Positions 56,493 to 60,961 of a stretch of DNA of 64,000 nt are shown in pieces (position 1 is the stretch's first letter; the number at the start of each line of letters is the position of its first letter). The DNA lies in the NCBI GenBank assembly GCA_964035545.1, contig OZ037766.1, positions 15,986,722 through 16,050,721 on the forward strand, in the 5' to 3' direction. The stretch comes from Bugula neritina. Lineage: Eukaryota; Animalia; Bryozoa. The notes under the pieces are model-generated. The model was given only the letters and a program-made list of their open reading frames with translations, did not search any database and was not told where the DNA came from. Made by a program: the position numbers and the translations under genes.

Positions 56493-56931
56493 GTATTATT
56501 TGAATTTGAAGTTGAATAACTTCATTCAATTTAAATTTTAATAAAATAGTATTGAATTTGAATATTCTGTAAGCCATGCATACTGATACTATCAGTGATA
56601 ATAATACAATTACATCATACATACTGAAGAGTGGAGGAGAATGAAAAGTTTCTTATCAATATCATTCATACTGCAAACGACAACCACAATCATATGCTAT
56701 AACTATAACTATAAGTATAAGTAATAAGTATTACTGTGTTAGTATAATTATAAACTATATAAAATTAAATAAAATAGATGTCTATAACTAAGTCTAGCAA
56801 TATGAATATGTTTATGATTATCATTAATAACATTATGATTATGATTATGATCATCGTTATCATTATGATATTGATATTCATTATGTTACACTTGCTGCCA
56901 CACTTACTGTTAGCATATTCATATTGATATT

Positions 56932-57111
56932 TGTTTATGTAACTGCTGTTTTGTAACACTTATGTTTTATGTTATGTCCTAGCGATTATGTTTTATTTAC
57001 AAGATTGTATTACTGTTGTAGATTAGACTGCGGCCTCAATTATACATGCTACATAGACCACTAATAAACTCACACCATATCCAATATACATTACACGATA
57101 CATTATAAACA
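56932..57111 (+). repeat. 5' LTR (left arm of inverted repeat)
   Basis: TGTTTATG...TATAAACA, contains AATAAA, immediately followed by the PBS. Confidence 0.93.
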
Positions 57112-57127
57112 TGGTGCCCCGAGTGAG
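57112..57127 (+). promoter_or_regulatory. Primer-binding site, elongator tRNA-Met-like
   Basis: TGGTGCCCCGAGTGAG directly after the LTR; complementary to a tRNA-Met(e) 3' end ...CTCACTCGGGGCACCA as I recall it. Confidence 0.75.
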
Positions 57128-57167
57128 CTACTAATAAGGAGACAAGGGTGTTCGTCAGTGAGTAGCG

Positions 57168-59606
57168 ATGGCTGAAAGCGATTTTCTAATCCCAAAGCCC
57201 ATGGAGGATGGTGCAGACCTGTCATATGAGTGGACCAGATTTTTGGAGGAATTTGAGCTGTACCTCGTTGCTACGGAAAAGGACAAGAAAGCAGATAAAA
57301 TCAGGATTGCACTGATGCTCAGATGTATTGGACCCAGAGGTATCGACATTTTCAAGAGCTTCACATTCACTGGTGGCAAGTCAATAGACAAATATAGTGA
57401 TGTGACAGAAAAGTTTCAAGCATTCTGTTTGAAGACGTCAAACAAGATAATAAAAAGGCACCAGTTGCTTTCCACGAAGCAAGGCTGCATGACAATTGAT
57501 GAATATGTCACAAGTCTTCATAAAATAGCACGGGAGTGCAGCCTAGAAGCGATGTATGACGATTTCTTTCTGCAAGCTTTGTTGTTGGGCATCAATGATG
57601 AAGAAGTAAAGAGAAAATTATTTGAAGCAGATGATAATCTCACACTAGACCAGGCGATAAAAAAATGTAAGATGGCTGAAGCATCCAAGAATGATATGAA
57701 ATCCTTGAAAGGTGAAGAGTCGGTGCATGCATTACAGCCTAAGGGTAAACTAAACAAGCCCTACAAAGGTAAACAAAATGCTGAAAATTTTGACTCCAGA
57801 TCAAAGGCCAAATGCGGTAACTGCGGAAGTTCCCACCAACCAAAAAAGTGTCCGGCTTACGGTCAACAATGCCATGGATGTGGCAAATACAACCACTTTA
57901 GGAAGCTATGCAGATCGGCTAGACAAGTTCATCACCTTACTGATGCTGACATACAATCAGGTAATGATTCTGATGAGTCTTTGTTATGCCTACAGGTCAT
58001 CAGATCTAACAAGAAGTTGCTGAGCACAATAGAGACGCACAGCAAAGGCAGACATGTGAAGATCTTATATCAGCTAGACACAGGTGCTTCATGCAACATT
58101 CTGAACTACCAAGACTACTGTGCGCTACAGAAGCCAAGTTTAAAGAATCACAGACCAGACCTCAAACTGTTTGACGGATCCACAACAAAACCACTTGGGC
58201 AGTGCCAGATACAAATGGCCGGAAGAACGTACAATTGTTATGTTGTCAAAACAAATAATCTCAGTTTACTTTCTGGTGATACTTGTCTGGACTTGGGACT
58301 TTTGTCTATTAAACACGAATGGGTTAACATGGTCTCCACTGCAACAACTGTTGAACAGCTTACAGAAGAATATGCTGATGTATTTCAAGGTGTGGGATGC
58401 CTTCCAGGAGACTACCACATCGAACTGGACAAGGATGCAATTCCTATCAAAAACAGCAACAGAAAGGTTCCGGTTTCAATGCTAGCAGACCTCAAAACAA
58501 AGTTAGAAAGTCTTGAGCAGAACCAACTAGTCAAGAAAGTTGACTATCCAACCGATTGGCTCAACAACATGGTAGCAGTGAGAAAGCCTAGTGGTAAACT
58601 AAGAGTGTGTCTTGATCCATCAAATCTCAACAAAGTAATTAAGCGGAACCACTTTCCCATGCCAACATTAGATGATGTTCTGGTTGAACTCGCTGATGCC
58701 AAGGTTTTCTCACTTTGTGACGCCAAGGATGGATTCTTGCAAATCAAATTAGATGAAGTGTCAAGCGACCTAACCACATTTTGGACCCCTTATGGCAAGT
58801 ACAAATGGCTAAGGATGGCTTTCGGTCTGGTATCCAGCAGCGAAGAGTTCCAGAGGCGACTGTCTGAAGCCCTAAACGGTCTCACTGGAATAACTGTAGT
58901 GGCTGATGACATTCTCATTTATGGTAAGGGAGACAACAAAGAGCAGGCAATGAATAATCACAATCAAAATTTGGAGAAATTGCTGATCAGAGCGCGTGAA
59001 GTGAACCTCAAACTGAACAAGGACAAATGTCGTTTCTTACTACAAGAGCTCCCATACATCGGTCACATCATAACCGAACACGGCATCAAGCCAGATCCCA
59101 AGAAAGTCAATGCAATTCGTGAAATGGCACACCCGAAAGATGGTGATGGAGTTAGGAGATTTCTTGGACATATAAACTACGTATCAAAATTCATCCCGGA
59201 CTGCTCTGCAGAGTCGGAGCCATTGCGAAGGCTTATCAATGTCACAGATGACAAATTTGTTTGGGGTGAAGATCAAATTAACGCTTTTGACAGGCTGAAG
59301 GAATTACTAACTCATGAGAAGTACTTTCGAGTAAACTATCCCATTGTGGTTCAGACAGATGCTAGCACGGGTGGACTGGGAGCCGTTCTGATGCAGGATG
59401 GAAAGCCAGTATGTTATGCATCACGCAGCCTCACTGACAGTGAACAAAACTATGCTCCTATTGAGCTTGAGCTTTTAGCAATTGTATATGCCATGCAGAA
59501 GTTCGATCAATATGTCTTTGGCTGTAAGGACCTTACTGTGCACACGGATCATGAGCCGCTGGAGCCAATCCTGAAGAAGTCTTTGTTGAAGGCACCATGT
59601 TTATAA
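57168..59606 (+). CDS. Single-ORF Gag-protease-RT-RNase H polyprotein, truncated before integrase
   Basis: 812 aa; double knuckle CGNCGSSH...C and CHGCGKYNHFRKLC; QLDTGAS protease; MAFGL and VADD (RT); QTDAS...IELE...TDH (RNase H). The last two codons and the stop (TGT TTA TAA) come from the inverted LTR. Confidence 0.93.
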   Translation: MAESDFLIPKPMEDGADLSYEWTRFLEEFELYLVATEKDKKADKIRIALMLRCIGPRGIDIFKSFTFTGGKSIDKYSDVTEKFQAFCLKTSNKIIKRHQLLSTKQGCMTIDEYVTSLHKIARECSLEAMYDDFFLQALLLGINDEEVKRKLFEADDNLTLDQAIKKCKMAEASKNDMKSLKGEESVHALQPKGKLNKPYKGKQNAENFDSRSKAKCGNCGSSHQPKKCPAYGQQCHGCGKYNHFRKLCRSARQVHHLTDADIQSGNDSDESLLCLQVIRSNKKLLSTIETHSKGRHVKILYQLDTGASCNILNYQDYCALQKPSLKNHRPDLKLFDGSTTKPLGQCQIQMAGRTYNCYVVKTNNLSLLSGDTCLDLGLLSIKHEWVNMVSTATTVEQLTEEYADVFQGVGCLPGDYHIELDKDAIPIKNSNRKVPVSMLADLKTKLESLEQNQLVKKVDYPTDWLNNMVAVRKPSGKLRVCLDPSNLNKVIKRNHFPMPTLDDVLVELADAKVFSLCDAKDGFLQIKLDEVSSDLTTFWTPYGKYKWLRMAFGLVSSSEEFQRRLSEALNGLTGITVVADDILIYGKGDNKEQAMNNHNQNLEKLLIRAREVNLKLNKDKCRFLLQELPYIGHIITEHGIKPDPKKVNAIREMAHPKDGDGVRRFLGHINYVSKFIPDCSAESEPLRRLINVTDDKFVWGEDQINAFDRLKELLTHEKYFRVNYPIVVQTDASTGGLGAVLMQDGKPVCYASRSLTDSEQNYAPIELELLAIVYAMQKFDQYVFGCKDLTVHTDHEPLEPILKKSLLKAPCL

Positions 59607-59777
59607 TGTATCGTGTAATGTATATTGGATATGGTGTGAGTTTATTAGTGGTCTATGTAGCATGTATAATTGAGGCCGCAGTCTAATCTACAACAGTAAT
59701 ACAATCTTGTAAATAAAACATAATCGCTAGGACATAACATAAAACATAAGTGTTACAAAACAGCAGTTACATAAACA
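59598..59777 (-). repeat. Inverted LTR copy (right arm)
   Basis: Exact reverse complement of 56932-57111. Confidence 0.93.
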
Positions 59778-60154
59778 ATATTGATTATGGTATAATTTAT
59801 AATCAAAATTATTATAAATATAACTTAAACTTTATTTAAACTTAAACTTTAATAACATTATCATTATGATTAAGTTAACAGCCATTGAATGATTGATAAA
59901 AATTATCTTAAAGTTAATAAGTATAACTAAGAATTATTTATAAAATAATAATCATCAGTATAAATATAATTATATAATATATTATTACTTTGAGCGTAAG
60001 CATTATAAACTATAACTATAACTATGCTTAATAAGTTAATTGTAACGTTGCACTTATGGCTTATACTTATAGTTACAGTTAATGGTATAGTATTAGTATA
60101 GTTATAGTAATACTAATACTGTAATAGTTTTGATTGAATGATTGGAGACGAGTA

Positions 60155-60163
60155 CCGGAAGTG
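60155..60163 (+). promoter_or_regulatory. ETS/GABP-type motif CCGGAAGTG between SCYL2 and the ZDHHC gene
   Basis: Motif match only; an inverted CCAAT (ATTGG) lies at 60331. Confidence 0.3.
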
Positions 60164-60961
60164 ACATTATGAAAACAGAAAATATTTACTTGATCCAACA
60201 CAAATCTAGACCTAGTAACTTACACAGACCAAACTCCAATTTACACAAAAAGTACTTTTATCAAATAGTCCAGACGAGTTACTTGCACAAACAAATAGAT
60301 GCGCAGGCTTCAACTCTATAGTAACGCTTGATTGGCTAACCTCGAAAGTCTTAAAATTAATTCTATACCTTTGCTATTGAGTATAAAATTTCCTTCGTTT
60401 CATTTGAATTTCAGTTCCTTCTTATTGTTTCACACCAGACGTGGCGTTATATTTACAATGACTTACTGTTCACCATTTTGAACATGTTAATGTTATGGTA
60501 GTTTTTGCAATTATCAACATTACAAAAAGTTTCACTTTCACAAATATTAAATTTAATATGATTATCATTATGATAAATCATAATGAATATCAATATGTGT
60601 GTTAGAAATACTAATAGACATGAGTGGTACTACTAGTTGTAACACTCATGTCAGTAATTGGTTTTCACTTTGAATTTTAAAGTTAATCAGAATGAAAATG
60701 ATCATAAACCCTAATCATAATGATAATAAAGATATATCATTATCGATATTTATATTAATATTGGTAGTAATAATTATAATCATGATGATAATCATAATGA
60801 TAATGACAATTGCTTTTACTTTGCTTTGCTTTTTAATTTAGGAGCTTTCTAATAGTAATAGAATGTTTTTACTTTTAATGAAATTATTTATATTTTTGTT
60901 GTCTCAGTTTTGTGCAAACTGAAACTGGCAGTGTAGCACAGACTAGCTAGACTCTAGACTG

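Follow-up and report, generated by a model that had tools for sequence, protein, structure and literature searches.

The 64,000-nucleotide stretch of Bugula neritina DNA analysed here (the window) contains a retroelement whose two LTRs are inverted relative to each other, so that both ends of the insertion are U3 ends. This locus raises the question of how such a copy arose and whether it belongs to a new kind of mobile element. Our analysis indicates that it is most likely a molecular fossil of a probable reverse-transcription copying error and not a new kind of mobile element.

The repeat structure is exact. String comparison of positions 56932-57118 with the reverse complement of 59591-59777 gave identity at 187 of 187 positions, as claimed in the first-pass annotation of this DNA, and a repeat search extended the arms to 56920-57118 and 59591-59789 (199 nt, 97%) with every mismatch falling within the 12 flank bases. 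Past the LTR, the inverted arm continues for 7 nt with PBS sequence instead of host flank, and thus derives from an LTR-PBS context, either the 5' LTR or strong-stop DNA, and not from a 3' LTR. Also in agreement with that annotation, ATATT is read on both sides of the element, and searches of the window copy for an integrase, a PPT and a direct 3' LTR found none. The 5-bp ATATT duplication falls within the 4-6 bp made by DDE integrases, a comparison carried out on the window copy alone. When one ATATT is removed the flanks join as ..CATATTGATATTGATTATGG.., giving two tandem ATATTG units that fit the hexamer-rich flank. The coordinates of all features are collected in Table 1.

Table 1. Features of the inverted-LTR element, in positions of the window
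Feature	Position	Strand	Remarks
Target-site duplication, left copy (ATATT)	56927..56931		Read directly
5' LTR, 180 bp, TG...CA (TGTTTAT...ATAAACA)	56932..57111	+	7-bp terminal inverted repeat TGTTTAT/ATAAACA
PBS, TGGTGCCCCGAGTGAGCT	57112..57129	+	Directly after the CA of the LTR; first 7 nt (57112-57118) inside the exact inverted repeat
Intact 812-aa ORF, gag (CCHC)-protease (DTGA)-RT-RNase H	57168..59606	+	No stops
Second GGCACCA, in gag	57457..57463	+	Only other one in the element; unused alternative mis-pairing site
9-nt gap (3 codons, K-T-L)	59318..59319	+	In frame, between AAG repeats; the 9 nt are present in all parental contigs
Junction microhomology GGCACCA	59591..59597	+	Native pol codons (aaG GCA CCA); reverse complement of PBS nt 1-7
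Inverted 180-bp LTR	59598..59777	-	Exact reverse complement; U5 towards pol, U3 start towards right flank
Target-site duplication, right copy (ATATT)	59778..59782		Read directly

Inverted LTRs can also result from two independent insertions in opposite orientation, adjacent or nested, that are followed by recombination or deletion. The AT-rich flanks would allow ATATT to occur on both sides by chance (~0.003 for a 5-base match at a local GC content of ~0.25, by arithmetic). It had been argued earlier that the target-site duplication speaks against such a recombination and we share this view, as that chance match would have to coincide with deletion end points lying exactly at both LTR termini and with a chance 7-nt match to the PBS (~6e-5 at a random breakpoint, by arithmetic). 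Additionally, the arms are identical and no remnants of a second element were found in a search of the assembly. We consider an origin from two insertions very improbable.

The coding part of the window copy yields Pfam matches to Retrotrans_gag, RVT_1, RT_RNaseH_2 and RT_RNaseH, with CCHC and DTGA motifs seen in the translation. Its RNase H ends early, after ..TDHEPLEPILKKSLLKAP, with the last two codons and the stop lying within the inverted LTR. A parent with direct LTRs and integrase, which the first-pass annotation had proposed to look for, is present in public contigs of the same species. This element is 4,811 bp long, has direct 180-bp LTRs, a PPT and an integrase, and is 99.3% identical to the window copy. 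Its single 1,327-aa ORF (P0001) encodes gag-PR-RT-RH-IN with the domain order RVT_1, RT_RNaseH_2, RT_RNaseH, Integrase_H2C2 and rve, and the window ORF is identical to residues 1-813 of this polyprotein at 809 of 813 positions. Parental contigs L063-L066 are bounded by the same 180-bp LTR, which is 98.3% identical to that of the window copy. Contig L065 comprises the LTR, the internal part and the LTR start, while L067 consists of the last 30 nt of the LTR, 4,451 nt and the first 30 nt of the LTR; the parental PPT, ..GTAAAGGGGA, adjoins the U3 start. Direct LTRs (TG...CA) together with a PBS and a PPT are thus found in the parent (L065, L067) but not in the window copy, and the Ty3/gypsy domain order PR-RT-RNase H-integrase is complete in the parent whereas the window copy itself lacks integrase. 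The element is a Ty3/gypsy-type (Metaviridae) LTR retrotransposon, and the parent is active and low-copy. We also observed that the parent occurs in the reads of run X1, which probably represents the source sample, and is missing from the assembly, presumably because parental insertions are heterozygous and lie on an unassembled haplotype.

Comparison with the parent defines the inner junction precisely. Parental contigs match the window up to position 59597 and then continue as AAACGTCTACAATCAATG.., whereas the window enters the inverted LTR. Parental pol crosses the site uninterrupted, reading ..AAGGCACCA and directly after it AAACGTCTACAA.. (K-A-P-K-R-L-Q), and contigs of 4 runs from 4 studies read through GGCACCA into K-R-L-Q-S-M. 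A sister family that is 64% identical has KAPKRLQSM at the same place. Since parental pol reads through GGCACCA, the 7-nt match to the PBS complement is native pol sequence, a point on which the first-pass interpretation depended. In a 7-mer scan of parental contig L065, GGCACCA turned up just twice, at positions 526 and 2669, and this contig has no 8-mer match that would permit the same mis-pairing. The 9-nt gap near the end of the window ORF is visible against contigs of all four runs as well as in the protein alignment with P0001.

To establish how many copies exist, we searched the 216-Mb assembly with the LTR, the internal DNA, the 812-aa protein, the integrase half of the parent and the missing 1,956 nt. 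No second near-identical LTR, internal part or missing 3' half was found anywhere in this assembly; the LTR occurs only at the two arms in the window, and the closest other matches to the element reach at most 70% nucleotide and 64% amino acid identity. The inner junction had no match in JGI metagenome contigs and the exact 812-aa product had none in the gene index, neither of which is informative about absence. The copy is also young. Of 11 coding differences from the parental contigs 10 are synonymous third-position changes. The four differences private to the window copy, at 57662, 57854, 58979 and 59555, are synonymous without exception, and not one of the 187 arm positions differs. The synonymous-only private changes and identical arms imply little or no decay since insertion. 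By these sequence measures the window copy is a single, young, dead-on-arrival copy.

Occurrence of the LTR and junction at one locus only, which is what the recommended search for further loci returned, agrees with one accident rather than with a mobile family of inverted-LTR elements. The alternative put forward earlier was a non-autonomous family that spreads in inverted-LTR form, and the intact ORF and perfect ends of the window copy do look functional. However, such a family would be expected in several copies, and the inverted form is confined to one locus in 216 Mb while the LTR pairs of sister families B (~13) and C (~19) are direct in all of the ~32 cases among the best 40 matches scored. 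Furthermore, LTR-element replication involves two strand transfers that need a PPT and a sense-oriented 3' R, and as the window copy has neither, both transfers would be impossible. This alternative is close to refuted and we give it almost no credence.

The evidence points to a probable origin by a strand-transfer error at the 7-nt inverted match, which would have generated a cDNA with two U3 ends that was inserted by integrase acting in trans. The breakpoint lies at a microhomology (GGCACCA/TGGTGCC) between templates that are both present in a replication intermediate, and we infer that the switch took place during reverse transcription. Within the particle, two DNA strands of plus polarity would pair through the inverted match. 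[quoted passage not shown] From this pairing a nascent plus strand halted at ..GGCACCA-3' could copy the strong-stop DNA and run off at its 5' end, the U3 start. Alternatively, strong-stop DNA could prime on the plus strand, provided that its synthesis had come to an end 7 nt into the tRNA. The latter corresponds to the version in the first-pass annotation, which requires a stop after 7 nt of tRNA. The data fit both routes, so that strong-stop DNA may have served either as the primer or as the template for a stalled nascent plus strand. In either case the product would be U3-R-U5-PBS-gag-PR-RT-RH'-[inverted U5-R-U3]. Owing to the 7-bp terminal inverted repeat of the LTR, two U3 termini would resemble a normal U3/U5 pair to integrase. 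Integrase from a co-packaged or co-expressed intact element could then join both 3' ends and create the 5-bp ATATT duplication, with host flap removal or replication needed to turn the branched intermediate into the final duplex. This sequence of events presumes that cDNA with two U3 ends can be integrated in vivo. The product cannot copy itself again, because its RNase H is cut short and integrase, PPT and a sense-oriented 3' R are missing.

The parent, the native GGCACCA and the single locus all agree with the mechanism proposed at first pass, which in itself stays a deduction. A double template switch after integration, a route not weighed in that annotation, also fits. According to this second scenario a full-length copy was inserted with duplication of ATATT, and its 3' part was later replaced. 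A nascent strand with ..GGCACCA at its end would have annealed to TGGTGCC of the PBS and been extended backwards along the 5' LTR, and a second switch at ..ATAAACA, which is common to the inverted U3 start and the U5 end, would have led onto the end of the 3' LTR and into the right flank. An ancestral full-length allele at this site would then have its U5 end abutting ATATTGATTATGG. Both junctions would involve 7-nt microhomology (GGCACCA/PBS and TGTTTAT/ATAAACA), the target-site duplication is kept automatically, and no unusual integrase substrate is required. Against these merits, it calls for two rare switches over ~2.5 and ~2.3 kb in a family of one or a few copies per genome, and the identical arms and lack of non-synonymous decay leave little time for them. 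Template switching is also far more frequent with reverse transcriptases than during chromosomal replication. No full-length allele came to light at this site, although the data had little power to reveal one. We regard rearrangement after integration as unlikely.

Host end joining before integration would give the identical outcome. Here an LTR-gag-pol molecule broken in RNase H and an LTR-PBS molecule would have been fused head to head by MMEJ and then inserted by integrase that was still bound at the U3 ends. A 7-nt junction microhomology suits alternative end joining as well as it suits template switching, and the sequence makes the two inseparable. Nevertheless, end joining demands two breaks exactly at the matching 7-mers plus a functional intasome that survives on the repaired molecule, whereas template switching requires one event only, and the junction is free of filler or deletion. 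We thus judge it improbable in comparison with a template switch in the particle.

Independent read support was sought in run X1. One error-free contig covers 56894-56960, from the left flank to the U3 start, and another covers 59749-59868, from the inverted U3 start to the right flank; each has 29 letters on the LTR side, 2 below the bridging threshold. None of the listed contigs crosses the inner junction (59597/59598) and those present there take the parental path, making the assembly the sole source of this junction. This situation, along with the incomplete assembly of the family, would fit an inverted arm created in assembly by a chimeric read, a fold-back read or a wrongly collapsed repeat. 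The X1 contigs, however, independently show outward U3 ends at both flanks, where a normal insertion would have its U5 end on the right, and 8 differing positions plus the 9-nt gap relative to the X1 parental contig define a distinct molecule. Moreover, an artefact would not stop exactly at the LTR terminus with a matching target-site duplication and a PBS microhomology. We accordingly hold an assembly error to be very improbable. A 35-nt joined-flank pattern for the empty site (up to 3 mismatches) had 0 matches in the assembly. Apparent joints across the element in X1 were considered as an empty allele and dismissed as repeat noise, their sides being just 20-26 letters long within hexamer-repeat flanks.

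Several known systems share individual features with this locus. In HIV proviruses, inversions form an established class among the defects that arise in reverse transcription, and asymmetric HIV-1 LTRs have been explained via plus-strand strong-stop DNA and the PBS (PMC9278108). Like defective HIV-1 proviruses (PMC9278108), the window copy appears to be an integrated, replication-dead product of template switching that lies between normal integration sites. Unlike these proviruses, which have direct and sometimes partly deleted LTRs, the whole right LTR of the window copy is inverted to give two U3 ends, with the switch located at a 7-nt inverted match between PBS and pol. Copies of the non-LTR retrotransposon L1 formed by twin priming (10.1101/2021.12.20.472354) likewise combine inversion and truncation through a second priming or pairing at short homology, and are dead on arrival with a target-site duplication. 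Twin priming takes place on the chromosome (target-primed), in contrast to the error proposed here, which would have occurred between strong-stop DNA and pol in a cytoplasmic particle ahead of insertion by integrase. A foamy-like endogenous retrovirus of the guppy is also an integrated LTR element described as having an 'inverted LTR' (PMC5210030), but the description is one sentence that gives no junctions, target-site duplication or mechanism. In the searchable full-text literature, which mostly excludes subscription journals, we found no account of an LTR element that is integrated with a U3 end on either side and has its join at a PBS/pol microhomology.

DIRS elements are similar in having inverted LTR-like ends and an RT/RNase H related to Ty3/gypsy (PMC3950715, PMC7192593). 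They differ in possessing a tyrosine recombinase in place of a DDE integrase and an internal complementary region, in lacking a protease and in making no DDE-type target-site duplication, where the parent of the window copy combines direct LTRs with a protease and a DDE integrase. Neither the window ORF nor the parent yielded a recombinase domain; the parent instead has rve/Integrase_H2C2 and a DTGA protease, and the inverted form occurs at a single locus and not as a propagated architecture. The direct LTRs and DDE integrase of the parent led us to reject DIRS, foldback and DNA-transposon readings.

If the copying error is the correct reading, this locus is a clean natural record of events that are seldom studied outside in vitro systems or retroviral vectors. 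It would indicate that a short inverted match within pol is enough for mis-pairing with strong-stop DNA or the PBS, and that concerted integration of a DNA having U3 at both ends can be carried through by a Ty3/gypsy integrase. LTR-finding programs search for direct repeats, so that inverted-LTR copies are missed or annotated as DNA-transposon-like. It remains a single event with no evident consequence for the host. By analogy one could speculate that the locus acts as a natural 'killer' allele whose hairpin RNA silences the active parental family in trans, an idea that we think has little chance of being correct. A transcript from the intact 5' LTR would contain the 5' R-U5 and the 3' inverted U5-R, which could pair into a long perfect duplex; if processed to small RNAs, this duplex could help limit the number of family copies per genome to one or a few. 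Maize Mu killer (PMC3440606) is similarly a rearranged transposon copy in which one of its own ends is inverted and duplicated, with potential to form hairpin RNA against an active family. Mu killer, whose silencing activity is proven, derives from a DNA transposon, and the window locus resembles it in sequence structure only.

Sister families provide further context. In families B and C, whose LTRs are otherwise unrelated, the LTR is followed by the same 13-16 nt of the PBS, and a 13-nt PBS pattern occurred at 24 places in the search, mostly PBS sites of related elements; a host tRNA for the PBS was not found with this 13-nt pattern. One sister copy (G000:C4:8044157-8049698) combines direct LTRs of normal form with an inverted copy of gag-PBS-LTR in its interior. 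Its inverted part ends 13 nt before the U3 start and has a 12-nt filler, as expected if linear plus-polarity DNA ending at U3 was the template. Among ~55 loci this was the sole copy with a long and near-identical internal inverted duplication; all comparisons between copies in this analysis were pairwise. Together with the window copy, it points to recurrent copy-back errors onto plus-polarity DNA in these elements.

A repeat search of the window recovered inverted arms at 56920-57118 and 59591-59789 (199 nt, 97%), and direct comparison confirmed the exact inverted repeat described in the first-pass annotation: 56932-57118 is the reverse complement of 59591-59777 at 187/187 positions, with all mismatches confined to the flanks. 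The motif ATATT lies immediately outside each arm, as had also been claimed, and by our own arithmetic (local GC ~0.25) the chance of such a five-base match is ~0.003. An origin of the arms from two separate insertions is unlikely. The intervening ORF encodes gag, CCHC, a DTGA protease, RVT_1 and most of an RNase H domain, and it ends in ..KKSLLKAP-CL-stop with the final two codons located within the inverted LTR. Integrase, a polypurine tract (PPT) and a direct 3' LTR, which the same annotation had listed as missing, are all absent from this copy.

Locations of the features discussed (families B and C are sister families of the window-copy element, PBS is the primer-binding site, G000 is assembly GCA_964035545.1 with C4 one of its contigs, and L-numbers are nucleotide loci)
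Feature	Location	Description
LTR	window 56932-57111	180 bp, TGTTTAT...ATAAACA
PBS first 7 nt, TGGTGCC		complete each inverted arm beyond the 180-bp LTR
ORF	window 57168-59606	812 aa, uninterrupted, between the arms
Family B		64% aa identity, 195-bp LTR
Family C		50% aa identity, 232-bp LTR
Shared PBS start TGGTGCCCCGAGT	window 57112-57129; L035 (family B); L050:1448-1460 (family C)	
Aberrant family B copy	G000:C4:8044157-8049698, minus strand	loci L006+L021+L023, C4:8044705-8050868
Degenerate repeat arrays	window 56690-56890; 59840-60120; 60550-60810	

A protein search of public data from the same species identified P0001, a 1,327-aa protein with RVT_1, RNase H, Integrase_H2C2 and rve domains that matches the window ORF at 809/813 positions up to K-A-P; the search also returned a 54% match to a bryozoan protein. 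P0001 is encoded by seven contigs (L063-L069), among whose record labels are symbiont and biofilm metagenomes. Contig L067 consists of the last 30 nt of the LTR, 4,451 nt and the first 30 nt of the LTR, while L065 contains a full LTR, the same internal part and an LTR start. Thus, the parent has direct LTRs and a length of 180 + 4,451 + 180 = 4,811 bp, and the integrase-bearing progenitor presupposed by the first-pass annotation exists in public contigs of this species. The parental U3 start is abutted by a PPT (..GTAAAGGGGA), and the PPT region precedes one contig aligned to the window copy. Contigs from four runs in four studies span 56932-59597 and run on from there with AAACGTCTACAATCAATG.. 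for another 1.6-1.9 kb, and parental pol reads ..TTGAAGGCACCA|AAACGTCTACAA.., which encodes K-A-P-K-R-L-Q. At the equivalent position family B, 64% identical and present in the assembly, reads KAPKRLQSM. The parent itself thus carries the 7-nt identity of pol to the PBS complement, and GGCACCA is native to pol as originally proposed. This motif occurs only twice in the parent plus strand, at gag position 526 and RNase H position 2669, and that strand contains no 8-nt match to the complement of the PBS.

The inverted arm has PBS bases, not host flank, beside U5, and its outer end coincides exactly with the U3 start, where strong-stop DNA naturally has its 5' end. The position of the PBS bases indicates that the arm was derived from an LTR-PBS unit rather than from a 3' LTR; such a unit is either the 5' LTR or plus-strand strong-stop DNA. 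From this anatomy and textbook LTR-element replication we infer a mechanism whose most economical form is a single error. A plus strand growing through pol would halt at ..GGCACCA-3', pair with TGGTGCC on free or displaced strong-stop DNA and copy that DNA through to its end. In the reciprocal route, favored by the first-pass annotation, strong-stop DNA would be the primer and would have to end after 7 nt of tRNA. The resulting top strand would be continuous, with both 3' ends reading ..CATAAACA-3' in duplex DNA. Since TGTTTAT is common to the tips of U3 and U5, a helper element's integrase should accept this pair of ends, and the bottom strand would be completed by host flap removal or by the next replication round. 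The main rival, which we rate lower, is a double template switch after integration. Such a switch could use two 7-nt microhomologies, one between PBS and pol and the other in the terminal inverted repeat of the LTR, and it would also preserve the target-site duplication, but it demands two rare chromosomal events within a short time in a family of one to few copies. Template switching is, moreover, routine for reverse transcriptase, which counts against the chromosomal route. Host end joining of two cDNA fragments is unlikely.

Inversions and asymmetric LTRs are recognized classes of defective HIV proviruses that are ascribed to reverse-transcription errors (PMC9278108), and an inverted LTR is mentioned in passing for a guppy foamy-like ERV (PMC5210030). 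Inverted repeats are part of the normal structure of DIRS elements, but these use a tyrosine recombinase, and L1 twin priming is the non-LTR analogue. In the literature searched, which is thin on older retrovirology, we came across no account of an integrated LTR retrotransposon that has U3 at both ends and its junction at a PBS/pol microhomology. We class the window copy, which is without evident function, with defective reverse-transcription products, a known class. As a well-resolved single event with an identified parent, it is both a natural record of mechanism and a caution for annotation.

Run X1 is probably from the source sample (share of words 0.89). In its error-free contigs the left flank runs into the U3 start, and the inverted U3 start runs into the right flank, at a depth of 55-72 that matches one haplotype. 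Each of these contigs extends no more than 29 letters into the LTR, which is the most that k = 31 contigs allow and 2 letters below the bridging rule. The right side of a normal insertion would present a U5 end, so the contigs support outward-facing U3 ends on both sides. Two alleles with depths of 57 and 68 are present in the flank at 60139-60300, where the haplotypes differ by ~5%. The inner junction between pol and the inverted LTR is seen in the assembly and in no listed contig of the four runs, since at that point the contigs take the parental path, which is deeper (depth 155). An assembly artefact is unlikely. No empty allele was found among the contigs of the four runs or as a joined-flank pattern in the assembly. 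The insertion site consists of AT-rich arrays of degenerate hexamer/12-mer repeats (TATAAG, TTATCA, ATAATG), a type with very high genomic copy number and a word depth of up to ~7,000 in X1.

Within the 216-Mb assembly (321 contigs), in which the window corresponds to G000:C2:15986722-16050721, the LTR is found at the two arms only. There is no other copy of the internal DNA above 68% nucleotide identity or of the 812-aa protein above 64% amino acid identity, and the parental part missing from the window copy yielded nothing above 70% and 60%, respectively. A propagating inverted-LTR family is unlikely. The intact 4.8-kb parent is likewise absent from the assembly, and in X1 it is present at ~1.5 haploid copies beyond the locus of the window copy (contig depth 155 versus ~60 per haplotype). 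The likely reason for its absence is that the parental insertions are heterozygous and lie on the other, unassembled haplotype. This family also occurs in several runs that are labelled, or were guessed, to be RNA, so it is probably transcribed, a statement at family level as the contigs cannot assign transcripts to the window copy.

Compared with the parental contigs, the window copy has 8-12 substitutions in 2,666 nt and a 9-nt in-frame gap (59318/59319; K-T-L) that is unique to it. This gap lies in the linker preceding RNase H, with an AAG triplet on each side, and could be a slippage deletion that arose in the same error-prone round of replication or a polymorphism from a parental lineage that was not sampled. 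Among coding differences, 10/11 are synonymous third-position changes, as are all four private to the window copy (4/4 synonymous), so they arose under selection in active-element lineages and not through decay at the locus. This pattern, along with the 0/187 differences that separate the arms, marks a young insertion from a parental lineage unsampled by the four runs.

The PBS start shared with families B and C, both in the assembly, indicates that three families with unrelated LTRs (180, 195 and 232 bp) use the same primer tRNA. At PBS position 15 (57126) the window copy has A and 3/4 runs have T, a difference that may reflect priming by different isodecoders. Among the best 40 matches, listed by position and strand, the LTR pairs of family B (~13) and family C (~19) are all direct. 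The aberrant family B copy on C4 also has normal direct LTRs, and its pol contains an 816-nt inverted copy of the element's own gag-PBS-LTR that ends 13 nt before the U3 start; a 12-nt filler, TTTGCTTTATTG, comes next, and 35 nt of pol are missing. The inverted segment is 99.0% identical to its source, a divergence similar in order to the small differences between that element's LTRs. It looks like a copy-back template switch, as expected if a growing strand copied back on linear U3-ended plus-polarity DNA and then returned to its template, and provides a second, independent hint of such copy-back errors in this element group. A 408-nt palindromic stretch (79% self-complementary; L032:2349-2743 = L039:4254-4648, G000:C6 ~10.4985 Mb) adjoins a family B copy.
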